A stretch of DNA of 64,000 bases from Rhodosorus marinus CCMP1338 (Eukaryota; Plantae; Rhodophyta), in assembly GCA_029953675.1 (NCBI GenBank), contig JAMWBK010000007.1, forward strand, positions 620,001 through 684,000. The letters are read 5' to 3'. A model generated the notes under the pieces. It did not search any database. It was given only the letters and a program-made list of their open reading frames with translations, and was not told the origin of the DNA. Both the position numbers and the translations under genes were made by a program. Shown one piece after another: positions 10,549-36,850 of the stretch. How positions within the stretch are numbered: the stretch's first letter is position 1; every line of letters begins with the position of its first letter.

Positions 10549-11559
10549 CCGTCGTCGATATTCCATAACTTGGATGCAGAGAAAACAGATTAAATAACAA
10601 TGCTGGCACGACGGCTAACTAGACCCTGCTGAAATCCTTAGATCCGTTCTTATTATGAGTGTGGCTTCCTATCACTACAACCGAAGATCGCTCGAGAAAA
10701 ATTTTCCTGAGCATTCTCCCGAATATCTGGGGCTATTATGACATCAAGCTCGAAGCTCCTTATGAGCCGTCGCACCGGACAGGGGCTGGAGACAAACAGG
10801 ACATGGGTTTTCAATGGTTTAGTGGGATTAGTTGCCCCGCCGGCGCGACAGGTCCTGGCCTACAAAAATAGACAGCGCGAGGAGATCCTGTCTGCTTCCC
10901 GGCCTTGGGTCTGCATCGTTCAGCTGGATATCACTTCATGTTGTTAGTGATCAAATTTGAAATGAACTTCAGGCGTAGGTTCATTCCGCCAGCTAATTCT
11001 GGCTTGACGTCAAGAGCCTAGCATAGCTTTGTAAACATCAAGGGAGTCTGACACGTGGTGCTCGGTGTATCAAGCTGGAAGTTGGTTCAGACGCAGCGTA
11101 CTTGATTTGGTGTTAGATTTTCATGTTTCAATGCGGTTTAACACGGCTACTAAGTAGGGCTACTGAGCTCTGGGAAGGTGCAGTCTTGATAGTCCTTCCA
11201 ACTGTCTAGCGGACAATTAAACTAGGGCTTAGCGACCGGGAGGAAGGGACAGGCCCAGCTGTACTGCTGATTTGACTATCTGCCGGCGGTTATTGGAATG
11301 GGATTGATGAATCACAATCCGGCTACGAACGTAGCAGTTTTGTTTTTCTGATTTTCAGTATATTAGGAAACTTGTGCAAGCGCAAGCACGCTCGTTTTTC
11401 TATGCCTGAAAATAGACATTGACAAAGGCGCACTTGAACAGACTTGAGGACGAGGACGCGCCTGACACCAGACCGAAATTACTCTGAAACACTATCACCG
11501 CCTAGCTCGCTTAGGTCATCATATCATCATATCACGGGAGGATTGTAGGTCGTTGAAGA

Positions 11560-11566
11560 TATAAAA
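11560..11566 (+). promoter_or_regulatory. Candidate TATA box of the 11716 gene
   Basis: GATATAAAAG about 150 nt upstream of the ATG; the same motif at similar spacing precedes the 40186 gene. Confidence 0.45.
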
Positions 11567-11715
11567 GGCGCGTGACCTGGACCTTGCTCGCTCTCAGCTC
11601 TGAAGAAACGTGGAAAAGCAAGAACAGATTTTTAAGCTCTTACTGCAAAAGGATAAATATCATTCACTCAAGAGAAGTATAGAACTGAAAACGAAAGCTG
11701 CACTGGCGAGCAACG

Positions 11716-13770
11716 ATGAAGCGATTTGTTGCCTTGATTGTCACCTTGGTAGGCGTCATTGGCGTTTCATCTGGAGTGCCAGTGGATGAGCAGCGTACAA
11801 ATTTTGTATCGAGACAGGCATGTGCTCAGAAAGGAATATTTCCAGATGGCGCGGAGAAGGTTCTGGGATGTACATCGATCAAGGAACTTGAGGACGAACT
11901 CATGGACGCCGTTTCCAAGATCGAGGTGAACAGTGGAAATGGAACTGTAGATGATGTAGTGAAGACCATAACTGAGAAAGCTTTGGGTCAGTTGATTGAC
12001 TTTGTCAACACGAATTCGACTCTTGTTTCAACCTACCTGGAGAGCCCGATGTGCCTGGGTGATTTTGATTCCAACGATGTCGCCGATACGCCCGACCTGG
12101 TCAAGAGTGGATGCCAAGCTCTTCCGCTCGGAGCAGATGAGAACTGGACTATGGTGGCTTTCAATCTTCCTCCGATTTCAGCTATCTGCCCGGAGATTCC
12201 TGCGACAAACAAGATGTCGATGTGCTTGGCATTCAGTCTGGACTGTGACAACCTCCCGAGCGTATCTATCTCGGTGAACAAGGGTCTCATTGCGTGCCTG
12301 TTAGGTTCCACTGAAGCAGTTGCTTCTACTGGAGGTATCAGCGGTTTGCTCGCGGCTGGAGCGGAAGCCGTTTTGGACGATGTAGCGGCTGGAATCTCCC
12401 TGAGTAACGCCTTCTCTGCTGATGGCAAGATTTTCACGGGAGAGAAAGGCGTCGAGACTACTACAGTGAAGGGAACGTATCATGATCATGTCCAAGTCTC
12501 GATCTCGCCAGAAACCTTTAAACTCCCAGACTGGGTCTCTCTCAGCGGCTTTATGGATCGGGTTGTCTCAACGAACAACGCTGCACAGGAGTTCTCCGAC
12601 CTCGTCGCTGCGTTCAAACCGGATGGTGACCTCGGAGATGACATCCTCGCTGTAGTCAAAGATCTCGACATCTCCGTGCTAATCAGCGGGCAGATCCAGT
12701 ACGCACTAAAGCTCAAATCTGTCACCAAGGGGATTCTACCCGATATTCCGACACAGGAGTTGGCAGAATTCTCCGCATTCGCGACGACCTTTGAGCAGAC
12801 CAGCAACGGAGGAACCAAACTGCTTCCGGGATTCTACCTTTCTGCCAGTGCGAGCAACCCGGCCATCCAGGTCATCAAAGCCATCGGCTCCAAAATCCTT
12901 CAGGCACTGGACGGTCCTCTCTCTTTTGTCGATTGGTTCACTGGGCTGGATTTGGATACTGAGGTCGCAAAACTGCTGGACGAAATCGACGATACCGACA
13001 CCGACGCACTGGACTTTGGACTCCTCGTGAACACGAAACAGGTCGTGATCATGTTCGGCGCTGGACTCACTTCGAAGCTCTCCATCAAGGTGAGCTGCGT
13101 GTATGACTACAGCAATGACACATTCAGCTGCCATGTGCAGGTCGGAGGCGTAGACAAGTTCATGACGGCGACGCTACAGACCATCGAGGGCGAAGTGGCT
13201 TGGGTAATGAGCGAGGCCTCGGACTTCTTCGAGTCTACTGGCAAAGTCATCGCGGCCTCAGTGGTCGATGCAGCGGGTACAGTCGAGGCTTTCAGCAAGA
13301 AGGCTGTGCAAAAGACTGCCGATCTCATTGAAGACGCTGCCGATGGTGTTTCATCCGAGCTCGACTCGTGGGCTCACTCCGCAGTGGCTATTTGTGGAAC
13401 CAGTGTGATCACGGACGCCGCCAAGTGTGGCTCTGACCTGGTCGTCGACGGGGCCAAGTGCGGCTTCAGCACCGTTACCAGTGCTGCTCAGTGCGGCACT
13501 TCGGTCATCTCAAGTGCTGCGGATTGTGGTACCCAAGTGGTTTCCGATGGAGCTGTTTGTGGATTTGATACGGTCACCGACGGTGCAAAGTGTGGGTTCG
13601 ACACGGTCACAAGCTGTCTCACGAGCTTCTTCACGAACTGCAAGAAGGCTAAGAGCTGCCAAGTCCCCAAATCATGTAGCATCGCACTCTCATGTGATGT
13701 ACCAAACACTTGCCAGATCGAGAACAGCTGCTCTCTTCCGAAGAGCTGCTCGATTCCAATAGCTTGTTAG
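11716..13770 (+). CDS. Secreted hypothetical protein with C-terminal Cys-rich 11-aa repeats
   Basis: 684-aa intronless ORF; signal peptide MKRFVALIVTLVGVIGVSSG; seven CGxxxVxxxAx units at 13393-13620, then a C-x5 periodic tail. Confidence 0.85.
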   Translation: MKRFVALIVTLVGVIGVSSGVPVDEQRTNFVSRQACAQKGIFPDGAEKVLGCTSIKELEDELMDAVSKIEVNSGNGTVDDVVKTITEKALGQLIDFVNTNSTLVSTYLESPMCLGDFDSNDVADTPDLVKSGCQALPLGADENWTMVAFNLPPISAICPEIPATNKMSMCLAFSLDCDNLPSVSISVNKGLIACLLGSTEAVASTGGISGLLAAGAEAVLDDVAAGISLSNAFSADGKIFTGEKGVETTTVKGTYHDHVQVSISPETFKLPDWVSLSGFMDRVVSTNNAAQEFSDLVAAFKPDGDLGDDILAVVKDLDISVLISGQIQYALKLKSVTKGILPDIPTQELAEFSAFATTFEQTSNGGTKLLPGFYLSASASNPAIQVIKAIGSKILQALDGPLSFVDWFTGLDLDTEVAKLLDEIDDTDTDALDFGLLVNTKQVVIMFGAGLTSKLSIKVSCVYDYSNDTFSCHVQVGGVDKFMTATLQTIEGEVAWVMSEASDFFESTGKVIAASVVDAAGTVEAFSKKAVQKTADLIEDAADGVSSELDSWAHSAVAICGTSVITDAAKCGSDLVVDGAKCGFSTVTSAAQCGTSVISSAADCGTQVVSDGAVCGFDTVTDGAKCGFDTVTSCLTSFFTNCKKAKSCQVPKSCSIALSCDVPNTCQIENSCSLPKSCSIPIAC

Positions 13771-13949
13771 TTTCACTTCAGTGTTTCTCGTCGCGAGAAC
13801 CGTTGATCTGCTGCTATTTGCACGTTACTAAAGAAGTAAAACCAATTTCATTCTGAAAGTTCTTCGTACTGCCGCGATTCCAGACATGTTCCGTCTCAGC
13901 AGCTCACCTCATCTGCATTACCAGATACAAATGTGCGGGGGCTTTCTCT

Positions 13950-16400
13950 CTTCTTCGTGGGGGTTCGTTGTGAGGTATTTGTCCTATTGGGTTTGGTCGG
14001 GTTGGTTTTTGGCCGGGGTTCTGTGGTGAAAAGTTTCCTCACCAAACTTTATCGTGATGGTTGGGGTCTTCCCGAGCCCCGCTCCCTTTGGGGCGGAGCC
14101 ACACAGCAAGGAGGTATTGACAGCAGCGGACCTCGAGTTTGTCTGAGCTCTGGCACTTTCTCGCCGGTGGTGGATCCGCAGAGTGTGTCTGGCACGCAAC
14201 TGGGTGCCTTTCTTGTCCGCAGTGACCAGCTTGGTCACCGCCGCCGGGGATAAGGGCGTCCTGCCGCAGCTCACCCAGCGTCTCTGTGTGCTGGAATCTG
14301 GGCTGGCGGAGGATGCAATTTTGACGGCAGACAGAGTGGCCACGGTGCCGCCAGGCCCCGAGGCAGTCATAATCGGAGGATCAGTCAATTTGAACTTGTC
14401 CCGGGACAGGCGAGCTGATCCCTTCGGGACAGTGCGGATTTTGCGCGTGGAAAGGGGGTTCCCAACGAGCACCCATGTTCGGGGACTGGTGGTGACCGAG
14501 GTGGTCCACCCGCGGGCGTCGTTTTGCACATATGTGAAGATGTCTACCTTACCTTAGCAGGACATTCAGCAGGTAGGTCCCCTCCCACCCAGGTTAGGCG
14601 AAGTGGCCCGAGGGGACCTCGTATTGCTCGGCCTTGAGGCGCGGAACTACGGCAGCGCGAACAGCTACAGTGGTCCAGTTTTTACCACCGCATGAGGAAC
14701 CTTGGGGAGGCTCGGCAACAGTTTCGCAATTTCTTTATGTGCGCAATGTGCGTCTGAAGCTCATACGGGGACACATCCTGTCAATGCTAGATCTTAGGTA
14801 CACCTGTGCGGAATCATTGGGCTGTAAGCGCGAGGATTTCCTTTCGCAAACTACGAGGGGCCAATGTTCTGTTGGTTGTGACATCGACTGCAACCGCTTA
14901 TCCTCAGGCGCTGCTCCCTAAGCCAACAGACCAGTGACCCGTAAGCGCCCGGTGGCTACGCGGGAACCCCCAGGTGGTTCTTTATTTTGCCTTTGACCGC
15001 TTCTCGATGCATTTCCACGCGACGGGACAGATTGCAGGACTTTCTGTGAAGGAGTGCAGTGTGAAGGCGGCGGACATCCATTAGTTCCGCATTCATCGCA
15101 TTGAGAAGCTCCTGTTGGCGCGATTTCGGTCCAGTCCGCGCCATCTTTGCGAGTCAGTGTCGACTTTCTTTGATCGAGAGCGGCGGTTGGTTTGCAGTCG
15201 CTGGCTATGAGGGGGAATTACAGCGCATAGACGTGCTGGAGGGTTCAAGAGCCAGCACTACCTCCGTGGATGGGGGCAATGAAAGGGAGCTGGATGGAAT
15301 GTTGGTGTAGGGTACTCCAACGACTCTCCGAGACGCCTCGGGCACCCTCACGCGCGCCTCACGCAGCGGACGAGCCAATCCCATAGTGCGATTACCAGGC
15401 AAGCGAGTAAGGACGGACTCCCTAGGGTCTTAAGTGGGAGAAAGATCATTGGTTTTGCTAAAGAAGGACCATTAGCTCCGCTGGTACGGCTGCGATGTCG
15501 GAGCCCCTGGACCCAAAGGCTCACGTCGAGCAGGGGGGGCCGGGACTGGGGTGTTTGGAGGACGCAGTTTCGGAGTTGGCTTCGGAGGTGGGTTTCTTCG
15601 GTAGGGGCTCACTTCCCCTACCGATGAGGGGCCGGGTTGCACAGGTAGTACTGCCCCGCAGGGAGCTCTTACAGGTTGGGTGTATTTTGGACTTCATATT
15701 TGCGAGTTTGGCCCGCAATCTGCGGGTTGTGGTTATGTGGATTACGCCGCGTTTGATCCTGGCCCCCGCCGGTACATCAGCGCGTAGCTGCCCTGTCCGG
15801 GACCGGCTCGCAATGTTTGCAAAGTGTGTACATGACGTCGCTCGAGGCCTCGGTACGCACGGTCCAGCCCGCTCGTGCTCGCAAGTGATGGCTTGGGCGC
15901 AGAAGCCGGTGGAGGTTGGTGTTTTGAGTCGAGCGGCACGGGTTTTGGAGGGACAGGCACCTGTCCTCCCCTATAATGACCGACTGGCGGAACCGGTATT
16001 CGCATTATTTCCGTCGTCCGATGTGGTTCTAGTCCAACTTTGCGCCGCTTCTCCACCAGAGTTGGCCCGCCTTCGCATAGATATGACGCTCCGCGAGTGT
16101 GATTTGGAGGACCTCTCCGCAGCTCCCGCCGCGGACGTTCCCCTGGACCTTCAGGCCTCCGCACGGAATTATTGCAGGTACTGAGCGACGGACCGACGCG
16201 CATTCACCTGATGAGCTAGGCATGCTCTGAAAATTATACCTGGGCACAGGCAGCCACACAACAACAGGATACGTGTGAGATAGAGCTGAAAAAACACTTC
16301 GTACAAGCAGCAAATTGGGGATCTTACGCTTATGTTCTGGTTTCTCACTTAGCAGACCTCTCGCCTTTGTCACGTCCCAGCGTTGTCTGTTATCACCGCG
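13950..16400 (+). mobile_element. Degenerate 5' portion(s) of CRE family A-like element
   Basis: 15330-16200 is colinear with 5320-6400 (e.g. GTATTTTGGACTT, GGxCAGGCxCCTGT, GCACGGAATTAxTGCAG). No intact ORF; the boundary and the 13950-15300 assignment are uncertain. Confidence 0.5.
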
Positions 16401-17449
16401 CACGTTTGATCTACATTGAAATGCGCGCTTATCTCTTCTGCTACTTCATCACCGCTCATACGGGTGAGTTGTTCACGATGTCAACGATGATGCTCGCATC
16501 TCGCTCGTTGATGGGAGGTAGTTCGTTAGGTGCTTCCACCCTTTGGTTTGTGTAGCCGTCCCTAATAGCGCAGTTGATAAACATTGACGCGATTTAACAA
16601 GGTGTTCGATCCTCTTCAGACTTCAGTTGGGATGATGCAACGTACGTGATGAGGGTTAGAACTTTTGAAGCCTTGATAAACTTTTCCTCCTCTCTCTTCT
16701 CTCTTTTGAAGGCACTACCGATCAGTTCCGGGAAATCTCTCCTTTCTTAATCGTCGGCGGATAAAAGGTAGTTATGTCCGCTCCCTCGCGCTTTACGCTT
16801 TTCGAAGTGACGCTTGAACGGCCGAACTCTGGAGTTGTACCGGATCTCCTGCTGCCCGTGGGAGCGTCATCTGCGGTCATGTACCGATCGCACTTCTGCA
16901 GTGCTTCTTGAGGCGTTCAATATTGTTGCTTACCGGTAAGACGAGTTCTAGGGCAAGTTGATCTGCAAGCAGATCAACTTACCCTTGAACTCGTGTTATT
17001 GCGGGTGTCGTCGCGCTGGCATCCTGAAGTTGCATCGCAGCGCATATTCCTTTCTCCTCGCCATCTGTACCTTAGTAGCTCTGATAGACTGTTTGCATTT
17101 TTCTTTCAGCCTCCGACTGAAAGGAAAAACCCCGAGGTGGAAAGAAGGGGATGAGGTTGTCCTGGGGAAAGAATTACCTCCCCCGCGATAACAATTACCG
17201 CGTAAGAAACGTGAACATAAACTCTGCGAATACGAGCTGGAATCGAGGATATTATTAACCATTCGTTCGTTCGTTTGTTCGATTTAGGAAAAACGATTGT
17301 TTTTTATAAATAAAAAAAGCGGTATTAATGCCGCTGATAAACGGTACTTGAATTCTGATCTATTGTAAGCGGAATCGAGGGTCTTCCCCCCCCCCCCTCC
17401 CTTTGAACCCTTTCTTGGGGCTTGCACCGTGCTGCCTACGGAGCAGATG

Positions 17450-18277
17450 CTCTAATCTCCCCGAGATCGCCCCCGCCTGCGTGGTCTTGGAGGGTGTGTT
17501 AGCTCTCAGTGGCTCATGACCGTCCCCGCTTTTCCGCCGCTCACACTGACCGACTTCGAAGTGCGCACTACTCTGCGCTTATAGCTCGGCTTGCATCAGC
17601 CGCCCTGGTCTTCCGATATGGGTTCGCCGTGCCCTCTATGCTCTCAGAACAAAGATACCGCGGATTTTGGCGCCCACCTGCTCGCCAGCTGCCCGCTGTG
17701 AAAGCCGCCCGAACCCGACGACATACGCAGATCTTGAACCTGTTATACCGTGAACTTCGACCTATTGTACGGAAAGTCGGTCTTGAAGTTGAACGTGAGA
17801 AGCTCCTGCCTATCGCAGAGGTACCAGAATGATGATCGCCGCGTGCCTGACCTCGTGGTCACCTGTGACGATAGCCGCCGTACGACGTACGTTGATCTTG
17901 CTGTTCCTAATCCTCAGACTGGTCGCTATTTTCCGGCTGCAGTGGATTTTTCCCTGCCAATACGAGACATCGCAAAGAGTTGAAATATGCTGGGGCCTTG
18001 TCTTCCGTAGGCATTCGTGCTTCGGCTCTAGCTCATCCCCTGGTCCTCTGGTCATTGAGTGCTTTGGGTTTATGGATTCAGTTGGTTCTCGTTGGCTTCG
18101 GGAATTGTTCCGCGAACGCTCGGACCTCTTGTCGTCGTTGTTTACCCTTTTAAGTTTCTTGCTGTGGCGTATGAACGCTGGTTTGATGTTGGAGGCGCGC
18201 GATCTTCGCGGCGCTTAGTCTTTTTTCTTCCCCTCGGGGTTTTTTCTTTCAGCCTCCGATTAAACAAATTCATTCAG
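17450..18277 (+). mobile_element. 5'-truncated CRE family A element (CCHC knuckle, RLE, ATTC tail)
   Basis: CPLC...AHLLASC knuckle, RVPDLVV..YVDLAV and VIECFG RLE motifs; tail CTCCGATTAAACAAATTCATTCA. Confidence 0.85.
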
Positions 18278-18544
18278 TTGACGAGACAAGTCGAATTTAG
18301 TAAGCGCAAATTCCTCCAACCCTCTCGCTTGTCATTGCTTTCTGCTTGACTTTTCATGATTTATTTCTATAAAATGATTTTTTTTTGTTTGACTGGATTT
18401 CGGGTAAATGCCTGTTTTTCTTCGAATTCTTTTTGCTCGTTGTACAACGGTAAGCTGAGAGTGTGGGCAGTCTTCCCGGGAAGAGGGCCGGTCTCACAGG
18501 TTCCATTTTTTCGTTTGGAAGGCTTTGGGCATCTGTAAGAGTCA

Positions 18545-18740
18545 AGCTTGGTGTGGCTGCGTAAATGTTTTACCGAACATCCTGAAGAGTATCTGGTGCT
18601 CCTCCGCCGTTTAAGTTCGCCTGGCGGTATTCTAGCAACACGCTCGCAGAGGTGCGCCACCGCCGCCAGGGCTTACATGCTCTCCTCCCTAGTCTCTAGT
18701 TTCCTTTTACGTCTTGTGCAGCGCATCAGGCTATGTTAGT
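18545..18740 (+). mobile_element. CRE family B 3' fragment
   Basis: WLRKCFTEHPEEYLVLLRRLSS.. and the GCGCATCAGGCTATGTTAG end, matching 395-590. Confidence 0.75.
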
Positions 18741-18779
18741 GGTGCTACTAAGTAAAACCATCATTATTCAGGACTGAAA

Positions 18780-23440: not shown

Positions 23441-25504
23441 ATGACAATTTCAGGTTTTACTGTACTCGCGTGGATCGCGCTGATTGGAAGCGTGCTAGCG
23501 AGCGCTAGGTTCGATGTTAATCTGAGGGTCGATTTCGGGACTACGCTGAAGACCGGAGGTGTAGAGACGTTTTCGAGAAGACAGTTCATCAATGGGCACG
23601 GAACGTTCAAAGTAGATACGAAGGTCGTTTCTCAGGATATGCTGGATTACATAGTGGATGATCTCCATGTGAGCTTCAGTCGTTCTGCGAAAGGTCCATT
23701 CAGGCACGACGATTACCCGAGCAGGACGGCAAAAGACCAGGTGCAGGAGGATGGCGGAAAGTCTCTTAAAGATAAAGAATGCTCTAAGTGTGCTTATCAA
23801 GAGGAGCTCAGCCATATGAGTGAGCTGAGGGTGCTCACAGATGATCCTTTCGAGCTCCCGGAGATCACTAAGAGCAAAAGCACGCAGTCGACAGCTGTTT
23901 CGTATGCTGGATACTATTTCAGATACTACTTCGACAACAAGTATGTGCCACCGCGTTACTATGAATGCTTCAACGAGCCCATGGTGAAGTACAATAGGCT
24001 CAAGGACAAAGGCGAGAGTCTTCAGCATTATGTCGCGCGCGTCTCCGATCTTTGCACCGACATCTGCAAGAAGTTGAAAGAGCACAGCCCCGAGGTGCTG
24101 GCTGGAGGCCCCGCGAACGCGTACGTTCGGCCTTCATTCAAGAACTTCTCGAATTTTAAGGACAGAATGAAGGTCTATATGGATGCCGCTGCGAAGGGAA
24201 ATTGCCAGAAATTCGTCTCCGAGCACGTCTACAACATTGGTGGCAGTTACGCTGAGGCCAACCTCGACCTCGTCCAGACCTACTCCTCCTGGCTTACAAA
24301 GGACGGTAGGCCACAGCCTTACTTGGTTAGCGAGATGGGACAGTATGTTGCCAGCTGGTACAATCGTGGCGAAGGCTACGCTGCTCCGCCGCTTTCTTCA
24401 AGGGACTTCTCGGTCATGACCGAGGCTATGAAAGTGCTCCAGATGTTGATGAGGGTGCCTGACGGCGTTCCTCAGGTCATCACCTTCCTAAACATGGAGA
24501 CTCAGGACCAGAGGGACATCACGAACGGTAACCCGTACCCGTGGAGCTTGATTGCGGAGAAAAAAAACGGCGATGTGAAGTTCTCAAACCTCATCAAGTA
24601 TTTTGAGCTCCTAAAGGGACTTGATGGTGATTTCGTTTACTCCAGCTCCGACGATATTCAGCTTAGCGTCAACGCCCTCGCAACGAGGAGCAAAGGGTAC
24701 ATCCTTATTCAGAACTTATCATCCAAGGCTGCAAACGTGACTCTGAATTCTCCTTACGGACACGAGCAACTTGAGAAGTATGAGAGAAGGCGTCTTCGGA
24801 TCGAACAAAAGCCCAGAACCTCAGAGGAGAAGGATCAGGGCATCCAGGTCGGCGGGGACCTGTCGTGGAAAACGCTTTCGAAAACAGCTAGCGCTGGAAA
24901 AACGATTTTGTTCCCGGAGAATTTCCAGGTTGAAGCGTACGAGATGACAGTCATCGTGATGCACCTCAAGACTCAATCCCGCAATCTCAGGACCGTTAAG
25001 CGATCCCGGTACTACGCCACGAGCGTCCTTGACCATAAGAACGTGGCAACCAAATTCCCAGCGCCGATCACGAAGCAGGAGAAAGTTCAGTACCTTTTTA
25101 GCGAGCTTCCAAGCTCGCCAGGTGGAGTAGTGGCTATTCGCATAGCCCATTCTCGTCCGGATGGAAAATCGGTCAAGCCCAACGTGTACGTAAACGACGT
25201 TATCGTGAAATCGAGCTCGTTTAGTTATGACGCCGCTGGAGGCTATAGAGAGTTTAGCGACGGTTCCTACTTTGGCGAGTTCATCGTTTACTATGACCTT
25301 GAAGATCTCACCGCCAAGAAAAATCCGAAGGTCTCTGTGATGTACCCCGACAGTGGGGGCTACTCTACCACTGTCGTACTTGAGATAGATGAATGCAGCG
25401 ACTCGTCTTGTTGCGTTCTAGCAAAGCGGTCGACGCAGACGAAATGTGACGGACAATCGGATTCCGGAAAGCTGAGGCCTCAGCCAACGCCAATGCCCAA
25501 GTGA
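23441..25504 (+). CDS. Secreted GH86 beta-porphyranase/beta-agarase homologue
   Basis: 687 aa with signal peptide. From memory of Bacteroides plebeius BpGH86A it aligns end to end: YYECFNEP (acid/base), GGPANAY..F..RMKVYMDAA, SEHVY..GSYAEANLDLVQTYS, PYLVSEMG (nucleophile), KYFELLKGLDG, RSRYYATS.L, RIAHSRP..S.KP.VYVN, MYPDSGGY..TVVLEI. Confidence 0.85.
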   Translation: MTISGFTVLAWIALIGSVLASARFDVNLRVDFGTTLKTGGVETFSRRQFINGHGTFKVDTKVVSQDMLDYIVDDLHVSFSRSAKGPFRHDDYPSRTAKDQVQEDGGKSLKDKECSKCAYQEELSHMSELRVLTDDPFELPEITKSKSTQSTAVSYAGYYFRYYFDNKYVPPRYYECFNEPMVKYNRLKDKGESLQHYVARVSDLCTDICKKLKEHSPEVLAGGPANAYVRPSFKNFSNFKDRMKVYMDAAAKGNCQKFVSEHVYNIGGSYAEANLDLVQTYSSWLTKDGRPQPYLVSEMGQYVASWYNRGEGYAAPPLSSRDFSVMTEAMKVLQMLMRVPDGVPQVITFLNMETQDQRDITNGNPYPWSLIAEKKNGDVKFSNLIKYFELLKGLDGDFVYSSSDDIQLSVNALATRSKGYILIQNLSSKAANVTLNSPYGHEQLEKYERRRLRIEQKPRTSEEKDQGIQVGGDLSWKTLSKTASAGKTILFPENFQVEAYEMTVIVMHLKTQSRNLRTVKRSRYYATSVLDHKNVATKFPAPITKQEKVQYLFSELPSSPGGVVAIRIAHSRPDGKSVKPNVYVNDVIVKSSSFSYDAAGGYREFSDGSYFGEFIVYYDLEDLTAKKNPKVSVMYPDSGGYSTTVVLEIDECSDSSCCVLAKRSTQTKCDGQSDSGKLRPQPTPMPK

Positions 25505-26586: not shown

Positions 26587-27831
26587 ATGAGGAACTGTAT
26601 GTTTATGGTTGTTTTAGGGTTTGCTTGTATCTCAACAGTTATCTGCCAACCGTTTTCTGTTATAAACGTGCCCTGTGGGAGTGATGTTCAGAAGGCTATT
26701 GATGACGCTGATCCTGGAGACCGTTTGGTTTTCCGTGGACACTTGAACAACGCTGACATTGTAAACGAGAGGCTTGAAAGCGCTGGGTTCACTGGGTTGC
26801 CGCAACCCCCCCCCCCGCGACGGCCGAGTAGTCTGGAAGAATGCTGCTTTTTCGAGACGGACGAGACCATCTTTGTGAACAAGATCCTCTATATCCGTGG
26901 TCTTTGCCTCAAACTGAAGGCCGGTGTAAAGAGAACGCCCGTTATGGAGGTCACAGCTAATGGAGTCAGGATGGCTTATGTGAGGGCCGTAGGAAACGTC
27001 GGATCTGCAGGAACCGACGAGGGCGGCGCATTGATCGTAGTTTCGGCGAGTTATTTCTCTATGCGTGACAGTACAGTGGATTTTGCCAACGGTGTCGGAA
27101 TTCGGGTTCGCCCGAGCACTGCAACCGTCAGGAATATAAAAATTACACGCGTTGCAGGAGAATACAATCTTGGCTCTCTTGTGTCCCTTGTAGGAAGGGG
27201 TAAAGGGCAAATACTGACGAAACAGGTTACATTGCTAGCCCTCCTCGCTGAAAACGGTACTGAAGGCGGTGTTCTGGAAATTAGGGACGGTGTTGATAAG
27301 GTTGAAGCCACTGATCTGAAGGCGTTCAACTCATTCTCTTGTGTCCAAATACTTGAGAAAGATGACAAGAGGGCAGTAGGCAAGGGGGATATCAAGGTTA
27401 TTGAAGCTCATGCTGTGAGATCTCAGTGGGTCGTCTACGTTGCCGTTGTGAACGATAAATATACTGGGTACTTTGATGGTGTATATGCCACCGAATGTGA
27501 GCAAACTGTCCATGTCGAGGGGGTGAGAGGAAGCACTTTCCATCACGTCATTACAAAGGATCCTACTGGTGGTCGTAAAGCAAATCAGTTCTACATCTCC
27601 AAGTGTAAAGACGTTGGGCTGGCTGGTATAAGATTCCAGCGTGGAGAAAGCAGAACCGCCTTCTACGTCACGAGCTCGAACGACATCCACATGTTCAACG
27701 CCAGGGTGAACTCGGACGACTACAGGTTCGGGATGATCTTCGACGAGAGTTCGCTTACGTATAGCCCGAGGCTGAACCTGACTGAGGTCGACTTCTCCAG
27801 AGCTTCTGTAAGACCGATTAAGTACATCTGA
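26587..27831 (+). CDS. Secreted right-handed beta-helix (pectin-lyase-like fold) protein
   Basis: 414 aa; signal peptide; VPCGSDVQKAIDDA.PGD.L start typical of beta-helix proteins, followed by alternating beta-strand repeats rich in V/I/G/N. Confidence 0.7.
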   Translation: MRNCMFMVVLGFACISTVICQPFSVINVPCGSDVQKAIDDADPGDRLVFRGHLNNADIVNERLESAGFTGLPQPPPPRRPSSLEECCFFETDETIFVNKILYIRGLCLKLKAGVKRTPVMEVTANGVRMAYVRAVGNVGSAGTDEGGALIVVSASYFSMRDSTVDFANGVGIRVRPSTATVRNIKITRVAGEYNLGSLVSLVGRGKGQILTKQVTLLALLAENGTEGGVLEIRDGVDKVEATDLKAFNSFSCVQILEKDDKRAVGKGDIKVIEAHAVRSQWVVYVAVVNDKYTGYFDGVYATECEQTVHVEGVRGSTFHHVITKDPTGGRKANQFYISKCKDVGLAGIRFQRGESRTAFYVTSSNDIHMFNARVNSDDYRFGMIFDESSLTYSPRLNLTEVDFSRASVRPIKYI

Positions 27832-27974: not shown

Positions 27975-30517
27975 AAGCAGCGAGCGACGAGTTCCTTATT
28001 CTGTAATCAACCGACTTCCAGCCAAAACGAGACCCGGGCCCAGCGGACTGCGAGCAGAGCATCTCCACGCCGTTACACCTGCGAATAAGCCCAGATCGGT
28101 TAAATTCCTGCGACTCCTAGCGAGGAACCACTGAGTCGTTCCCGCCAATACTTCGGCAGGCCCTTCGCAGCAACCAGTTGCTTCCGTTTATCAAACCACA
28201 AGCAGAAGTAGTGGCGACTGAGGGACGCCTCCGACTGAGACCGATTGCCGTTCCAGAAGTTCTGCGCAAGGTCTTTGCAGAGACTTTCAGATCTTCAGTT
28301 GGGGTTACAAGGTCGCTGCGCAGTGGGTACTTGGCGGAATCTCCGGTCGACTGAGCGACTTCCTCGCTCCGGAACAGCTGGGGATTGCCGTTCGGAGCGG
28401 ATGCGAACAAGCGTTACATGCAGTACAGGCCCACCTCTATTGCGAACCACAACACGCCTTGCTAAAACTGGACCTGGAGAATGCATTCAATAGGATTGAC
28501 AGACGACTGGCGGCGCAAGTTGCCGCGGCTTCGTTTCCAGAGGTACTACCTATCTTCCAGCTCGCTTACGGCTCATGTGCGAATGAGGCTCCCATGCAGT
28601 TCGGATGGACAGAAATCGACGAAAGCGCTCGGAGAGTCAAAGACAGGCTTTATCTGAGAGCAAGCACTGGCGTTAAACAAGGAGACCCCGTGGGACCCGT
28701 ACTTAACGCGCTCGCCCTGGCCCAGTTCCTTCGGGCCCTGCGCCGCAAGTTCCCAGAACTGCCGCTGGCGGCAGTACACGACGACATTTCTCTGGTGGGT
28801 GATTTAAATGTGCTGAAAAGTGCCCTAAATTGGAGTGAAGATGCACTAATAGGGATAGGAGCGCAGCTACAGCGATCCAAATGCCTCATCTACAAACCGA
28901 GACTGGACACACCACGTAGGATAAATGTGGATATTCCGGACATTCAGGTGACGCGCGAGGGGGCTACCTGTACTCTATTTCCATTGGAAGGCGCGAATAC
29001 GCGACTGTGACCTGCAGGACCATCCAAATACGTCATGCAAAGCTCTTGAACGCTCTTCAAAGTCTCCCAGAGTCCGAATTGCTAAGCTAGCGATTTTCCG
29101 ATACTGTGCGGGAACGCGACTTGACTACCATACAGGGGGCTGGTGTATCCACTGCGCCGGACCACCGCCAGGGAAGCCGACGGCATCACCCTTGCAGAGC
29201 TGGAAGTATTATGTGGAGGACTGAGACACCATCAAGCCATCACCGGATTTGAGGCAAACGTGGTGGAGGAGCAGATTCGACTGCCATGCCGATAGGGAAG
29301 GCTTGGGTTTGCTATGCGGACTAGGATTCAACTGGTCGGTTTTCACGCTGGATGGAAGCAGAGTCTTCAGGAGAATATCAGTCAGTCCTGTTACCTTAGG
29401 CGGCTAGTTTTGGACTGTATTTCGCATGCGGATGGACATCAGCGGCATAAGATCAATATGCAGCGGACCACGGACGATATGGCGGTGTAACTTGTAGCGG
29501 CAAGTCATACCGTACAGAGGAGGCTATCACCAACGACGAGTGCACGGATCAAGAGCCTAGCGGAATGGCAGCCATTAGCAGACTGTGGAAGAGGCACTGA
29601 GACGGATCCGACGAGTTCCCGAGGATATGACGGTCCCATTCAAAAAACGCTCTCTCGAGAGTGCCACCGTCACGCCTTCGAGATACTCACGGAGGATGCC
29701 ACTGTGGAGGACGTAGACAGGGTAAGAATCCGGTCGGCGGCAGGGACGGGTTGTGGCGTATGGCTACGAGACTGCCCTAACGTGGGTCCGCGGAAATTGA
29801 GTCGGGAAGAGATGATCTGGAGCTGAGGATGCTTCTGGGGCTACCACTACCTGGCCTAGGCCGGTCATACACTGGCACAGTCTGCGAGCAACCACACGAT
29901 GTGCGTGGGATCCAGCGACTGCACCACTGCAGGACGTCATCGGGGATGCGAACAAAGAGGTACGATGAGCTGAAAGTCGAACTGAGTCGATGGTTACACC
30001 TATGGAATTTCACAGAGATAGTAGTAGAGCTCAGGGGTTCTTTGCTGGGTCCGGAATTCGACCCGATATTGTAGCACGGCACCCGATGAGTGGTTGCGTG
30101 TACGTGATGGACGTGATGGTAACATCGCCACTTCAAAGGCATGAGTTGAGACATACGAGCTGGAGTTGCGGATATGCTGCGAAACAAGCAGAACAAGCGA
30201 AGGCTTTGCGCTATAAAGAAGTGCTGAGGGTGGAAAACCGAGACCTCGTTTTTGTGCCGTTCATTTTAGAGACTTTTGGTCGAATGGCGAGGCAAGCCTT
30301 GAATTTCTTCGCATAGGGACGGCGCATCTGCATGATCGTGACTCCCATCCGTCGTCGGTGAGGGGTCAATTAAATCAGATCCTGTGGCAGTATAATGCTG
30401 CGCTAGTTGAGCATGCGATCGAGAAAGATCGCGCAGATAGAACAATATTTCCCTTGAGTAGAACTTAGATGAGATCCCTGGACAGAGGGTCTAAGTAGAG
30501 TTACGTTAGTTTGGGGT
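27975..30517 (+). mobile_element. 5'-truncated CRE-clade element, family C (RT, RLE, partial tail), copy X
   Basis: RPIAVPEVLRK, GIAVRSGCE, LKLDLENAFNRIDR, GVKQGDPVGP, AVHDD (CRE-type RT); RPDIV..VMDVMV..FVPFILETFG (RLE); frameshifted. Confidence 0.9.
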
Positions 30518-31216
30518 CACCCCATAGCCTTTATTCGGCAGCTACCTACTGCAGCGCAATACCACTACTATACGTTCGCTCTAAAATTATTTAGACCTCC
30601 TGTCCAGGGGTCTCATCTTCTACTCAAGGGAAATATTGTTCTATATGCGCGATCTTTCTCGATCGCATGCTCAACTAGCGCAGCATTATACTGCCACAGG
30701 ATCCGATTTAATTGACCCCTCACCGACGACGGATGGGAGTCACGATCATACAGATGCGCCGTCCCTCTGCGAAGAAATTCAAGGCTTGCCTCGCCATTCG
30801 ACCAAAAGTCTCTAAAATGAACGGCACAAAAACGAGGTCTCGGTTTTCCACCCTCAGCACTTCTTTATAGCGCAAAGCCTTCGCTTGTTCTGCTTGTTTC
30901 GCAGCATATCCGCAACTCCAGCTCGTATGTCTCAACTCATGCCTTTGAAGTGGCGATGTTACCATCACGTCCATCACGTACACGCAACCACTCATCGGGT
31001 GCCGTGCTACAATATCGGGTCGAATTCCGGACCCAGCAAAGAACCCCTGAGCTCTACTACTATCTCTGTGAAATTCCATAGGTGTAACCATCGACTCAGT
31101 TCGACTTTCAGCTCATCGTACCTCTTTGTTCGCATCCCCGATGACGTCCTGCAGTGGTGCAGTCGCTGGATCCCACGCACATCGTGTGGTTGCTCGCAGA
31201 CTGTACAAGTGTATGA

Positions 31217-32281
31217 ACGGACGAGAGCCGATCCAGATTTCGGAGGGGGCTGTTATGGGGACGAACTGAGGCGCTTGAGGACTCTCCCATCGACAGAGTA
31301 TCGCCGACGAGGGGGAAGCTAGCCCTGGGTCACCGGTTGCCGATTACCAGGGCCTGAGCCGATTGTGGAGCTCGCGCACTGATGTGATACAACATAGCCT
31401 CACCTGGGGCCAACACAGTGCCACTCACGCAATCTGGCTCAACTCTCCACTCACACCGCCTACCACCGCCGCTCGCCTCCGCGGCATGGGAGGCCATCTT
31501 TCACATTTGTGGTTAACGACCCTGCCGTCATCACTGGGTCACCGTCTGGATGCCTTCCAGTTTCGCGGTGCCGCACGGATTTACCTGGGTTTGCCACAAG
31601 CTCCTTGGCACTCTAATCGGCCGTCTTTCTGTCAAGGATGTGAGAGTCGGATCGATGCTTGTGGTTACCATTTCTTAGGTTCATGCGGACTGTTGAGAGG
31701 TATTCGTACGAGGCGTCGCACTCGCTTCAAGTGCATTCTCAGCGAATGTCTGACTCGGGTAGGGCATACGGTTGAGGTGGAATCGGAACTACCCAGATCG
31801 GTCTCGGATAGGGCACCGCCCCGCTGTATCGCAGATCTCCTCGTCTCCGATGCTGCCGCCAGACGCTCAGCTTGTGTTGACCTCGCGATTACATGCCCTG
31901 TGGCAAGCGCCCATCTCACGGCTGCCGTCCGTCGCCGGGGAGCAGCTGCTTCGGCCCTTCGCCGCGTGAAGGAACGACGGTATGCTGAGAGTATGACCAG
32001 CCTGCCTTGCGCTGAGGGTCGCTCCCACCGGTTCCAGCCTTTCATTTTGCAAAGCTTCGGTCACGTGGAGAAGTCGGGTTTGGAGTGGTTGCGGAAATAT
32101 TTCACTGAGCATCCTCTTGAAAACTTGGAGCTTTTACGGCGCTTAAGTGTCTCTCTGTGCCGATATTCGAGCAGCATGCTTGCCGAGGCGCGCCATCGGC
32201 GCCTGGGTTTGCACGCTTCCCTACCTAGTTCTTAGTTCCTTTCAACGGTTTGCGTGGCGCTGTAGGCTATGCTAATAAAGC
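31217..32281 (+). mobile_element. 5'-truncated CRE family B element nested in copy Y, 11-bp TSD
   Basis: 290-aa ORF 31363-32235 with CxxC..H..C knuckle and IADLLV..VDLAI / FILQSFG RLE motifs; flanked by CAAGTGTATGA at 31206-31216 and 32282-32292. Confidence 0.9.
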
Positions 32282-35229
32282 CAAGTGTATGACCGGCCTA
32301 GGCCAGGTAGGGGTAGCCCCAGAAGCATCCTCATGCTCCAGATCATCTCATCCAGACTCAATTTCCGCGGACCCACGTTAGGGCAGTCTCGTAGCCATAC
32401 GCCACAACCCGTCCCTGCTGCCGACCGGATTCTTGCCCTGTCTAAGTCCTCCACCATTGCATCCTCCGTGAGTATCTCGAAGGCATGACGGTGGCACTCT
32501 CGAGAGAGCTTTTTTTGAATGGGACCGTCATATCCTCGGGAACTCGTCGGATCCGTCTCAGTGCCTCTTCCACAGTCTGCTAATGGCTGCCATTCCGCTA
32601 GGCTCTTGATCCGTGCACTCGTCGTTGGTGATAGCCTCCTCTATACGGTATGACTTGCCGCTACAAGTTGCACCGCCATATCGTCCGTGGTCCACTGCAT
32701 ATTGATCTCACACCGCTGATGTCCATCCGCAAGCTAAATACAGTCCAAAAGTAGCCGCCTAAGGTAACAGGACTGAGTGATATTCTCCTGTAGACTCTGC
32801 TTCCACCCAGCGTGAAAACCGACCGGCTCAATCCTCGTCCGCATAGCAAACCCAAGCCTTCCCCATCGGCATGGCAGTCGAATCTGCTCCTCCACCACGT
32901 TTGCCTCAACTCCGGTGATGTCTTGATGGTTTCTCAGTCCTCCACATAAGCCTTCCACTTCTGTAAGGGTGATGCCGTCGGCTTCCCTGGCGGTGGTCCG
33001 GCCCAGTGGATACGCCAGCCCCCTGTATGGTAGTCAAGTCGCGTTCCCGCACAGTATCGGAAAATCGCTAACTTGAAGTGCAATTCGGACTCTGGGAGAC
33101 GTTGAAGTGCGTTAACGAGCTTTGAATGACGTGTTTGGATGGTCCTGCATGTTGCCTCCGCGTATTGGCGCCTTCCAATGGGAATAGAGTACAGGGTAGT
33201 CCCCTCGCGCGTCACCTGAATGTCCGAATATCCACATTTATTCTACGTGGTGTGTCCAGCCTCGGTTCGTAGATGAGGCATTTGGATAGCTGTAGCTTCG
33301 CTCCTATCCCGATTAGTGCCTCTTCACTCCAATTTAAATCACTTTTAAGCACGTTTAAATCACCCACCATAGTAATGTCGTCGTGAACTGCTGCCAGCGT
33401 CAGTTCTGGGAACTCGCGTCGCACGGCCCGAAGGAACGGGGCCAGGGCGAGCGCGTTAAGTACGGGTCCCACGGGGTCTCCTTGTTTAACGCCAGTGCTT
33501 GCTCTCAGATAAAGCCTGTCTTTGACTCTCCGAGCGCTTTCGTCGATTTCTGTCCATCCGAACTGCATGGGAGCCTCATTCGCACATGAGCCGTAAGCGA
33601 GCTGGCACATAGGTAGTACCTCTGGAAACGAAGCCGCGGCAACCTGCGCCGCCAGTCGTCTTTCAATCCTATTGAATGCATTCTCCAGGTCCAGTTTTAG
33701 CAAGGCGTGTTGTGGTTCGCAGTAGAGGTGGGCCTGTACCGCGTGTAACGCTTGTTCGCATCCGCTCCGAACGGCAATCCCCAGCTGTTCCGGAACGAGG
33801 AAGTCGCTCAGTCGACCGGAGATTCCGCGAAGTACCCACTGCGCAGCGACCTTGCGCAGAACTTCTGGAACGGCAATCGGTCTCAGTCGGAGGCGTCCCT
33901 CAGCCACCACTCCTTCTGCTTGTGGTTTGATAAACGGAAGCAACCGGTTGCTGCCAAGGGCCTGCCGAAGTATGGACGGGAACGACTCAGGGTTCCTCGC
34001 TAGGAGTCGCGGGAATTTAACCAATCTGGGCTTATTCGCAGGTGTAACGGCGTGGAGGTGCTCTGCTCGCAGTCCGCTGGGCCCGGGTCTCGTTTTGACT
34101 GGAAATCGGTTGATCACAGAGAGTAGGGACTCGTCGCTCGCTGCTTGGGGGTTCCACACTCGTGGAGGGTGTGTGTTGGCTTGTTCGCGGATACGTCGGA
34201 GGTCCAATTCCACTTCCTCGTGTAGCGGTGTTGTTGGCTCGGCGGGGAAAAGCTCCCGGAGAGCCTGCCAGGTAGATGGTTTCAGAGGGACGAGATCCGT
34301 TGCCTAAAGTCTCTGGGCTGCGGCAGAAAGTCGTCCAACGTTGGCCAACCGAATTACTTGCGCATTGCGACGTTTTTCCCCATGGCGATCTGCCCGTCGC
34401 GCTCGTCCAGAGGGTCGGCACGCTGCCTTCGCGTTGAGTGCCGCCCATAGTTGTGAAAATTCCCCTTCCATAAGATGCTCAACTTGCACTCCTGGCTGGA
34501 GATCGCACTTTCCGAGGGCGAGACCCGGTAATACCATGATGAAAGCGCGAAGAAGAGGATCAGCATCAGGGTCGAGGGCAAATCCCAAAGCTTGGTGCAG
34601 AAGCGTGTTCCATTTCTTAACCCGGGCATTCGGCACATATTCCCGAGTCCCTACTGGACTGTGGGTAACTTTGCACCAACTGTGTCCGCCATCGGTGTGC
34701 GTCTCTAGGAACTGTAGCAGTTTGTGCTACCATGCCCCTGGGTCGGATGTGATCAAAGGTGTGATGCGCAGTCCCTCCCGGGAGTCACCTGCACTCATAT
34801 CTGTTCGCGAGGTGGTGTGGAATGAGTCTCTGGTCGGCCTGTTGGTGCAGTGTTGCCCTATGGAGCCTCTGCGGCTGCCGGAGTCATCTCGGTATCCTGG
34901 CCTGTGCCATCAGTGGATACTCGCGACCGCTCGTGTTGAGGAGGGTCGGGCAGGTTGCAGGGGAGCTCTGCATGAGGGTTATCCTGGGGTGCATCTTCTT
35001 CAGGTACTTGGGAAGTGGCTAGGGGATTACCCGGAGCTTGGACTGTCCCACGGGCTGCCTGTGCGTCCCCTGTAAAGGACGAGGCTTCAGGGTCTGCGTT
35101 CGTGGCGGCTGCAGGCGCTGGGGGTTCCGCGCTCTCTCCGGGTGCTGTGTTAAGATATTCCAGTCGTGCGTCCAGACACGCATGTATCGAGGCAAACTTC
35201 GCGAACGGAAGAGCCCGCATATTCATCGT

Positions 35230-35293
35230 GCGCTTGATTCGTTCCACCTGTTCAATAGCGCGCGCTTGATTCGTTCCACCTGTTCAATAGCGC
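35230..35293. repeat. 32-bp tandem duplication inside CRE ORF1
   Basis: GCGCTTGATTCGTTCCACCTGTTCAATAGCGC occurs twice in tandem. Confidence 0.9.
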
Positions 35294-35703
35294 GGGCGAG
35301 GGTCCGTCATGCGACTGCTTCCGGGAGCAGGCCGAGTCTCTCGTTGTGCCCAAGCAGGTTCCGGGGTTCGGGCTCGAGACTCGTGTGCACCGTCACTTGG
35401 TGGTCGTGACGGCGCTGTGCGAACGATGCGAACACTCCGGTGCGAAAGACTCCCCTCGCTATGGCACTACTGATGAATGGGATGGCATCCGGGTAGCAGA
35501 TGAGCAGCGCGTGTGTGACCACAAATTCAATGTGCGCGATCAAGCGTACCGGGAGTCCCAGATCCGTGCATAGGACCTTCTTGTAGTCTGACAGCGCCAC
35601 CTGCGCGGCCTAACATTCCGCAGGGTTGCCAATACCGGATGGGTTTCCGGGCCCCATCTACTGCCTCCTCCCGTCGCATGCAGTTGGCGCAGCGCAGTTT
35701 GTT

Positions 35704-36850
35704 CTCGGATGCGTAGCAATGATGTCTGGCCGTAGCCCGTAGTTTTCAAAGAACTTCTCTGGCTCCTGCTCGATGTCCAGAAAGTTCCACCTGTTCAGCC
35801 ACCTTGCGATCTCGATGTGCATATCTCGTCATGCCTACGTTACCACAGACCAGTCGACGTGGGGCAATGATGAAAGCATTGTACTCCATTGGCTCCGTGT
35901 TTACCACGGCATCGAGTACATTTTTCCGTAGTCCGCAGCCCTGGAATCGGTAGCCCCTGTAGTTGTCGGATATTCACCTGCATTTCCGTCGAGCTCAGCT
36001 TTTTCGGCTCCAACGTCGGCAGTTCTCGCAACCAGATTCCCGATCCAGAGCTCGAGGCGGACCTGATTCGAGCACGATGTTCGCCGAAGATGCGCGGACT
36101 GTTAACCAGGTGTTGGAATGCTGAATGGTGTGCCCTCCGAGAGAGAGTTTGTTGTGTAGAACCATTATTCCAATCGCCACCGTCTTCTGGGGCGTCTCCT
36201 GGGGGGTTTTCCCTCGTCTGCTGCAGGGTGGCAAGTCTCCTGATCCGGAGCGGAGTTTCGGGGCGCAGCCTGCGTTGTATCGCTCGAGCAGATGATCGCA
36301 TCCGGTCTGCGAGTTGTTCTTTGGACCGTTGTAGTCGCGTCGCGGTGTTAGTAGCTGGAGTTCTGTCTGTATAAACCTGCCTCTGCTTGTCAGTGATGTA
36401 AGGCCAGTCGCCTGGATTGCTTCGAAAGGTATTTGTCCAAGCCGAGTAGTAAGCGATAGGCTGTAGACGCCGTCGAGCAGCGAACCCCAATCCCCCCCCC
36501 GGCAAGGCAGCGCAATCTGTTCCCAGATGTGTCCCAGGCACTCCTCGTCCTCCACGCAGAGGTAGCAAGGCCTGAGCGTACGTTGGCCGTTTGCTGCTGG
36601 TCCCGATGACAGGGAAGGCCGTGGCATAGTCCTGTGAGAACCTCCCCGGACAGACTGTAGTGCTGCTAGTTATTTCACAATGCTTTCACAGTACTTTCAT
36701 TCCCTATTTTTAGATTGACGTTTAGCCTCCAACAATTACTTTTAAGTTACAGCAGGTTATAATTTACAGTAACCACAAGACTATATAAGACCTAGCTTTG
36801 CTAGATCTTGAGACCTAGAATTGAGTAAAGACAAGTTGGTTCGAAGAGTT
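35704..36850 (-). mobile_element. CRE family D 5' part: 5' UTR, ORF1 start, internally deleted body ending inside the RLE domain
   Basis: ATG at 36627 opens MPRPSLSSGPAANGQRTLRPCYLC..CLGH (homologous to 51810-51870). Then RARIRSASSSGSGIWLRELP..CTRC..FHHC and YGLRPDIIATHP, paralogous to family C. Confidence 0.7.

Follow-up and report, generated by a model that had tools for sequence, protein, structure and literature searches.

Glycoside hydrolases of family GH86 are textbook tools of marine and gut bacteria for eating red seaweeds. One of them, the beta-porphyranase BpGH86A of Bacteroides plebeius (4AW7), is encoded in a human-gut bacterial polysaccharide utilization locus that was itself acquired from marine bacteria; two others compared here are BuGH86, the endo-beta-agarase of Bacteroides uniformis NP1 (5TA0, 5TA1 and 5TA5), and Aga86A_Wa (8H97). 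The characterised galactanases of red algae belong to family GH16: CcGH16-3 of Chondrus crispus is a beta-porphyranase whose presumed target is the endogenous matrix, and the red-algal GH16 genes are interpreted as the product of an ancient bacterial transfer and later duplication (PMC9771727). We analysed a 64,000-nucleotide stretch of the genome of the unicellular red alga Rhodosorus marinus CCMP1338 (GCA_029953675.1, contig JAMWBK010000007.1, ~620001-684000; hereafter the window), which carries at 23441..25504 on the + strand a complete, intronless GH86-family gene of 687 codons plus stop, delimited by an open reading frame (ORF) call and by comparison with PDB sequences. Here the prey lineage owns the predator's enzyme, which reverses the usual picture of GH86.

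Family membership, fold and catalytic residues

When the window protein was compared with all PDB sequences by phmmer (E ≤ 1), the matches were GH86 chains only: Aga86A_Wa (8H97; E 6.2e-27, aligned across residues 152-653), BuGH86 (5TA1; E 3.1e-17) and, as the weakest of the three, BpGH86A (4AW7; E 4.5e-14). Identity to characterised GH86 enzymes is only ~20%. NCBIfam contained no model matching the protein. Pfam holds no GH86 barrel model; both accessory domains can be detected with it, and PF18206 (porphyranase beta-sandwich 1) matched above its gathering score (E 1.3e-7), with PF18040 falling just under its cutoff (E 2.2e-5; 24.9 bits, cutoff 26.2). Proteins named agarase or beta-agarase were among the bacterial matches of the exhaustive search described below.

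An AlphaFold (AF2) model computed from a 47-sequence alignment had a predicted local distance difference test score (pLDDT) of 88.6 and a predicted template modelling score (pTM) of 0.91. Foldseek placed this model with 5TA5 (6.7e-50, template modelling score (TM) 0.85), 8H97 (8.5e-47) and 4AW7 (2e-41), in each case covering all three domains and with TM values of 0.80-0.85 relative to the target. The next family, GH30, followed at 3.5e-16, ~25 orders of magnitude worse. From the N-terminus, the domains are a clan GH-A (beta/alpha)8 catalytic barrel (aa 23-395; 23507..24625, +), assigned from the AlphaFold secondary structure, Foldseek and the PDB comparison; a first, Ig-like beta-sandwich (aa 396-530; 24626..25030, +), assigned from PF18206 (Porphyrn_cat_1) and the strands of the model; and a second beta-sandwich of the BPA_C type (aa 541-652; 25061..25396, +), assigned from PF18040 and the alignment to the C-terminal domains of 8H97 and 5TA1. 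The modelled barrel with two Ig-like beta-sandwiches is the three-domain fold of GH86, and BuGH86 and Aga86A_Wa share this architecture (TM ~0.82-0.85, normalised to target length), as BpGH86A shares the fold.

The alignments also located the clan GH-A catalytic pair. The Glu in N-E-P after strand beta4 is E179 (nt 23975-23977; NEP motif, aa 178-180, 23972..23980, +), the predicted acid/base, and the Glu in S-E-x-G after strand beta7 is E298 (nt 24332-24334; SEMG motif, aa 297-300, 24329..24340, +), the predicted nucleophile. The solved enzymes 8H97, 5TA1 and 4AW7 have NEP and SE(Y/F)G at the aligned positions, and E179 and E298 are invariant across the 47 algal and bacterial sequences, as are N585 and G640 of the second beta-sandwich. 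E298 corresponds to the Glu that is replaced by Gln in the BuGH86 mutant structure 5TA0; this residue, E322, is the proven nucleophile of BuGH86 (E322Q mutant; PMC5849685). In addition, the algal clade keeps R46, H53, R81, E175, N178, F236, H262, Y264, D276, S297, G300 and F349, twelve positions that are each at least 85% conserved among bacterial homologues. On sequence, fold and catalytic residues the window protein is a bona fide GH86 member, with a catalytic machinery that appears intact and a predicted activity as a catalytically competent, retaining clan GH-A enzyme.

Genomic setting, gene models and paralogs

The ORF opens with ATG, is preceded by an in-frame stop 11 codons upstream and is fully open across 2,061 nt; the probability that 687 random codons would contain no stop is ~5e-15. 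It is colinear with its intronless paralogs and with bacterial GH86, and its description as intronless therefore stands. Its GC content (0.51) and GC content at third codon positions (0.63) are similar to those of its neighbours, including a homologue of algal Fea1. The N-terminus (MTISGFTVLAWIALIGSVLASA, aa 1-22; 23441..23506, +) looks like a signal peptide: read by eye, it shows a hydrophobic core and, after it, an A-S-A site, and in the AlphaFold model it forms an isolated helix of lower pLDDT (residues 4-20), the mature fold starting at residue 23. An equivalent hydrophobic N-terminus is present in all algal paralogs. An initial annotation, made from the letters of the window, had called this gene an intact, intronless bacterial-type GH86 beta-porphyranase/agarase of 687 aa with a signal peptide, both catalytic glutamates and eukaryotic retroelement flanks, placed in a eukaryotic genome; the family, the ORF, the glutamates and the signal-peptide-like character of the N-terminus are all confirmed by the results above, and the flanks and the genome by those that follow.

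The gene lies on a 2,212,799-bp nuclear contig of R. marinus. The CCMP1338 assembly is a long-read assembly of 31.2 Mb with 8,392 genes and 24,821 introns; 13 of its contigs exceed 1 Mb, most of them with telomeres, and twelve contigs bear telomeres (PMC10250338). Retroelement remnants flank the GH86 ORF on both sides, at ~15.5-18.7 kb upstream and at 27975-36600 downstream. The upstream sequence (15495..18744) is degenerate and was recognised as retroelement-related by tblastn and by blastn self-comparisons; downstream (27975..34146), self-comparisons and RVT_1 matches identified an inverted pair of reverse-transcriptase element copies that are 94-98% identical. The copies have in common a Cys/His-rich C-terminal ORF in addition to their RVT_1 matches. 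No break in composition was found in the window around the GH86 gene.

These observations bear on whether the gene might derive from bacterial contamination or a chimeric assembly, an explanation for which the bacterial affinity of the family, and nothing else, could be cited. The initial annotation had envisaged that reads might reveal a chimeric bacterial contig; what we found instead was a long-read contig of 2.2 Mb with even composition, eukaryotic retroelements on both sides and an algal Fea1 gene nearby. The paralogs point the same way, as they occur on four other megabase-scale contigs and adjoin genes for cyclin, Vps35 and Cpn10, and independent transcriptomes, from other strains and from Bangiopsis, contain homologues as well. 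Contamination or chimerism is thus effectively excluded.

Relatives were collected with an exhaustive HMMER (phmmer) search of 1.84 billion representative proteins, which gave 247 matches at E ≤ 1e-3. Word-indexed searches with the window protein, a 47-sequence profile and a Bangiopsis member returned close matches only, the profile search adding a single protein (P0160), and it was through the exhaustive search that bacterial relatives surfaced. The best full-length matches (~E ≤ 1e-44) came from R. marinus (the genome and the MMETSP0011 and MMETSP0315 transcriptomes), Bangiopsis sp. CCMP1999 (MMETSP1475) and sequencing run SRR22824290. The SRR22824290 copies (P0010, P0016 and P0017) lie on gene-sparse contigs of 48-51% GC and are at most ~35% identical to the Rhodosorus and Bangiopsis copies; their source is presumably another stylonematophycean or a related alga. 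Bacterial matches start at ~1e-37. Two more divergent algal members, P0025 (a Logan contig) and P0034, scored among the first of these and were recognised by the tree described below.

The R. marinus CCMP1338 genome contains at least nine GH86 loci across at least five contigs, including the window copy, NDN08_002097, NDN08_000131, NDN08_000651, NDN08_000604 and NDN08_007293 with its tail-to-tail neighbour; NDN08_002142 and NDN08_002144 are fragments and were counted as one locus. The paralogs share with the window copy the GH86 core, the absence of introns and the signal-peptide-like N-terminus, every examined locus being a single uninterrupted ORF. They are 25-59% identical to one another, as compared with ~79% for orthologues between Rhodosorus strains, and the closest paralog of the window copy, NDN08_002097, is 59% identical to it. 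Many are much longer than the window copy (838-1744 aa) and carry CBM4_9/DUF642-like repeats on Pro/Thr linkers. Neighbours of eukaryotic type were seen at three of the checked paralog loci; the genes next to paralogs include Cpn10, a HAD hydrolase, a C2H2 zinc finger protein, cyclin, an intron-bearing GT47 exostosin and Vps35. The GT47 exostosin-type gene (L007, 9382-11392, +) lies 0.8 kb downstream of NDN08_000604, and its position may reflect a link between matrix synthesis and matrix hydrolysis.

The deposited annotation splits the window ORF into a 168-aa model (23441-24077, same ATG) and a 186-aa model (24944-25504), the latter corresponding to a database protein (P0007) that is 100% identical to residues 502-687. 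Because of this split, an exact look-up of the full 687-aa product in protein databases gave no match. At another locus (L008), two paralogs at 4660-9894 (+) and 10790-15847 (-) are single ORFs of 1744 and 1685 aa that are annotated as a protein of 1297 aa and as one of 1266 aa with introns. We considered these introns and rejected them as annotation artefacts, both genes being single long ORFs, and obtained no evidence of intron gain in either paralog. The model of NDN08_000131 omits an internal segment. The GH86 family is intronless and systematically mis-modelled in the public R. marinus annotation, and proteome-based surveys of carbohydrate-active enzymes would undercount or miss it as a result of the split and truncated models.

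The gene models also bear on the question of whether the window copy might be a duplicate, surrounded by retroelements, that is silent or in decay. The databases hold neither a transcript nor a full-length gene model that matches it, the RNA-seq-trained annotation broke its ORF into two short models, and its surroundings are dense in retroelement debris. Yet the closest paralog is only 59% identical, and a copy dead for that long should have acquired stops, which argues that a reading frame open over 2,061 nt with all conserved catalytic positions intact is not such a copy. Furthermore, the same annotation mis-models family members for which other strains have transcripts: complete family ORFs occur in the Rhodosorus (MMETSP0011 and MMETSP0315) and Bangiopsis (MMETSP1475) transcriptomes, so that polyA-transcript evidence exists for the family. 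We consider a silent copy quite improbable.

Origin, proposed role and derived features

A neighbour-joining (NJ) tree was calculated from 140 sequences (504 trimmed columns, Kimura distances, 100 bootstraps, unrooted), which provided the phylogeny with bacterial GH86 and red-algal members that the initial annotation had proposed. All 16 algal sequences formed one clade with a bootstrap of 96. Within it, a core subclade (bootstrap 100) comprises the window copy, P0001, P0160, the MMETSP proteins of 820-1250 aa, P0011 and P0010; a second, more bacterial-like set comprises Bangiopsis P0014, Rhodosorus P0015 and P0034, P0016, P0017 and P0025. Run SRR22824290 has members in both sets, and the split between them therefore predates the divergence of its source from Rhodosorus. 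Outside the algae, ~230 clusters remained. Names were obtained from cluster look-ups, with sources checked down to rank ~35, and each source-checked non-algal cluster came from a marine bacterium, a metagenome-assembled genome or a bacterial-type metagenome contig. The matches include Bacteroidota (Marinoscillum, Saccharicrinis, Sediminitomix, Polaribacter, Flavicella and Cyclobacteriaceae), Verrucomicrobiota (Lentimonas and Haloferula) and Agaribacter. The nearest bacterial neighbour, P0033, is encoded on a metagenome contig of 65% GC in a compact operon, preceded there by genes for an aldehyde dehydrogenase and a mandelate racemase/muconate lactonizing enzyme (MR/MLE) cycloisomerase, enzyme types of the bacterial anhydro-galactose pathway.

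Since the algal sequences are a single, taxonomically narrow eukaryotic group within a family that is broadly bacterial, a single ancient transfer from a bacterium to an alga, followed by duplication, would be the parsimonious explanation. The recipient may have been the ancestor of the stylonematophycean red algae, with nuclear duplications then giving rise to the nine or more R. marinus loci, some of them fused to CBM4_9/DUF642-like modules; the presence of the family in Bangiopsis suggests vertical inheritance within the class. With respect to the horizontal acquisition postulated in the initial annotation, the bacterial origin of the family holds as the parsimonious view, and the notion of a single acquired gene gives way to an old family of at least nine loci.

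We are not aware that Rhodosorus makes agar or porphyran. In Stylonematophyceae the exopolysaccharide is cell-bound only, and galactose accounts for 78% of the bound polysaccharide in Bangiopsis, 87% in Rhodaphanes and 58% in Chroothece (PMC9031348); the polysaccharide of Rhodosorus is reported as a sulfated heteropolymer of Glc, Gal, Xyl and GalA (PMC12073197). On balance we think it probable, from the analysis as a whole, that the window enzyme remodels the alga's own galactose-rich matrix. The protein would be exported through the endoplasmic reticulum and would cleave beta-galactosidic bonds in the cell-bound, galactose-rich, sulfated matrix, and the outcome could be loosening or turnover of the sheath at growth, division or daughter-cell release. 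A parallel is the role proposed for the Chondrus GH16 beta-porphyranase, likewise derived by horizontal gene transfer. The GH86 family of R. marinus resembles red-algal GH16 in both scenario and proposed biology, and the two differ in that GH16 enzymes are beta-jelly rolls of clan GH-B and GH86 enzymes are TIM barrels of clan GH-A, which are unrelated folds; that GH16 occurs in Florideophyceae and Bangiales and GH86 was found here only in Stylonematophyceae; and that activity has been demonstrated biochemically for GH16, the R. marinus GH86 proteins being known from sequence and model.

Alternatively, the secreted enzyme might attack foreign polysaccharides, such as agar-type galactans from other red algae, or algal glycans in dissolved or particulate form, in the service of nutrition, competition or attachment. 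The nearest bacterial relatives are indeed catabolic, as exemplified by the P0033 operon, other relatives in marine Bacteroidota bear type IX secretion system tails, and the long paralogs have CBM4_9-like modules that are typical of scavenging enzymes. However, neither GH117 nor GH2, nor a 3,6-anhydro-galactose dehydrogenase or cycloisomerase, was seen in the window or at the paralog loci, Rhodosorus is a phototroph and has its own bound matrix, which contains galactose, and the precedent of endogenous red-algal galactanases indicates roles in the self-matrix. We therefore regard scavenging as unlikely and prefer remodelling of the alga's own matrix. The initial annotation had suggested both uses, and it had described the host's own wall as being of agar/porphyran type; action on the self-matrix remains plausible in view of the galactose-rich bound polysaccharide, and the composition reported for Rhodosorus is not agar-like.

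The substrate could also differ from agar-type galactans because of changes in the active site. In bacterial GH86, strand beta8 is followed by a loop with the pattern G-K-x-x-W (K-S/A-E-W in BuGH86 and Aga86A_Wa). The Bangiopsis-type algal subclade retains this K..W loop, whereas it has been replaced throughout the subclade of the window protein, in which the strand end and loop read NMETQDQR (aa 351-358; 24491..24514, +; from the alignment) and M-E-T-Q-D-Q stands in place of the bacterial motif. The altered loop suggests that specificity was retuned away from canonical agarose. Agarase and porphyranase are for this reason used here as family labels only, the specificity of the window protein being predicted at the level of the family; of the porphyranase/agarase identity given in the initial annotation, the family assignment was retained and the specific activity name was not.

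A second difference concerns the -2 subsite. N351 aligns with the position of its sulfate pocket, as judged from the alignment and not from the structure of a complex. The residue at the base of this pocket is Ser326 in the porphyranase BpGH86A, in which the pocket accommodates a 6-sulfate, and Met in the agarase BuGH86 (PMC5849685). The small polar N351 hints weakly at tolerance for a substituted or sulfated sugar there. The Met is printed as 'M396' in PMC5849685, and residue 396 in the chain would be Glu; the intended residue is probably M369, with a transposition of digits, because position 369 is +47 from the nucleophile, as is S326 with respect to E279 in BpGH86A, and because of the chain sequence. 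For the N-terminal -2/-3 subsite residues T82 and Q138 of BuGH86 and F77 and H114 of BpGH86A, pairwise alignments gave no reliable counterpart in the window protein.

The window protein further ends in an alga-specific Cys-rich, Pro-rich tail (CSDSSCCVLAKRSTQTKC...RPQPTPMPK; 25394..25501, +), recognised by a regular expression and modelled with pLDDT <50. The pattern, C-x3-S-CC-[VL]-L ... C followed by a Pro-rich stretch, was matched by 11 of 19 algal sequences, all of the window-type subclade, and by none of 152 non-algal ones. In longer paralogs the tail serves as the hinge to one or several CBM4_9/DUF642-like modules, which are attached by Pro/Thr linkers; the window copy, as the minimal form of the family, has no such carbohydrate-binding-module (CBM)-like parts. 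Compared with BuGH86 and Aga86A_Wa, the window protein is distinguished by this tail, by its nuclear gene and by a predicted eukaryote-type signal peptide.

The replacement of the K..W loop in the entire subclade while the Bangiopsis-containing one keeps it, the new Cys-rich tail and an identity of only ~20% to characterised GH86 enzymes could also mean that the window-type subclade has been neofunctionalised, its members acting on another beta-glycan, as transglycosylases or as carbohydrate-binding matrix proteins on a GH86 scaffold. Despite deep divergence, though, the catalytic Glu pair and about a dozen core positions are invariant or nearly so, which argues for hydrolytic chemistry at the -1 site like that of bacterial GH86, and in our judgement a change of this kind has a low probability. 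For hydrolytic remodelling of the self-matrix, which we continue to favour, several points nevertheless count on the other side. The reported composition of the Rhodosorus polysaccharide (Glc, Gal, Xyl and GalA) is not agar-like (PMC12073197), and the protein has another loop in place of the Trp-containing beta8 loop that characterises bacterial GH86. The signal peptide was judged by eye. A transcript of the window copy was not found among the MMETSP proteins, none of which is more than 59% identical to it, as against ~79% for orthologues between strains. Finally, the tree is an NJ tree only, in which the bacterial sister group has a bootstrap of ~33 and sources were checked to rank ~35.

More tentatively, the Stylonematophyceae might have diversified a bacterial agar/porphyran-degrading enzyme into a toolkit of at least nine genes in two deep subclades, one of them distinguished by a remodelled loop at the active site, a new Cys-rich hinge and CBM-like modules in arrays, and the toolkit would sculpt a galactan sheath of undescribed chemistry. 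If true, GH86 would have its first eukaryotic clade in these algae, agar-like (D-Gal/L-Gal-type) linkages would be implied for the matrix of 'primitive' unicellular and pseudofilamentous red algae, and the family would provide enzymatic probes with which to map the evolution of red-algal galactans.

Full-text searches retrieved no publication in which GH86 is connected with Rhodosorus, with Stylonematophyceae or with the genome of any red alga, and the GH16 paper (PMC9771727) makes no mention of GH86. In UniProt, some paralogs appear under automatic names only ('Beta-porphyranase A C-terminal domain-containing protein'). The initial annotation had allowed that red-algal orthologues might already have been described; our searches retrieved database entries with automatic domain names and no describing paper. 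The enzyme family and the type of evolutionary event are known, and the host domain and the derived subclade are new. Together with GH16, this would be a second, independent case in which red algae took bacterial galactanases into service, with wall dynamics as the presumed use, and it comes from an early-branching class that has received little study and whose matrix has hardly been characterised chemically. The enzymes may be useful as matrix-specific probes and as a source of new specificities for oligosaccharide production. The finding is readily testable, although not mechanistically unprecedented, and should concern marine glycobiologists and researchers on red-algal cell walls.

Other genes and repeats in the window

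A gene for a beta-helix protein with a signal-peptide-like N-terminus (26587-27831, +) lies 1.1 kb downstream of the GH86 gene. Its product has a sub-threshold Pfam Beta_helix match only and no match in PDB or NCBIfam. We considered this secreted protein as a conserved partner of GH86 and rejected it, as no homologue was found beside the paralog P0001. A right-handed beta-helix protein is also encoded at 1628-2941 (-), with matches to PF13229 (1.5e-12), NosD, DUF1565 and choice-of-anchor Q.

The 684-aa secreted product of 11716-13770 (+) has no Pfam match, and short Cys-containing repeats (..AKCG.. / ..SC..P.SC..) make up its C-terminus. At 40186-42264 (+), a 692-aa secreted protein has RTX calcium-binding nonapeptide repeats (PF00353, E 2.7e-54, 13 stretches) in two blocks, with a Cys-rich domain in front of each block; a GGxGxD-repeat protein also seems to be encoded downstream of the P0001 paralog (L001, 13765-15033, -). 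The 1137-aa ORF at 45070-48483 (-) combines a PF07995 glucose/sorbosone dehydrogenase beta-propeller with two Big_5 domains and an NPCBM carbohydrate-binding domain, a secreted multi-domain protein in bacterial style. The Fea1 homologue (55295-56638, -; PF07692, 5.5e-16), a relative of the algal low-iron-inducible protein, has a signal-like N-terminus and a C-terminal transmembrane anchor.

Further copies or fragments of the retroelement are present at ~0.4, 5.7-9.7, 34.3-36.6, 38.7, 43.3-44.6 and 51.6-54.4 kb. The inverted duplication downstream of the GH86 gene spans ~6 kb, and a tandem array with a unit of ~242 nt at 43.9-44.6 kb is derived from the 3' end of the retroelement.

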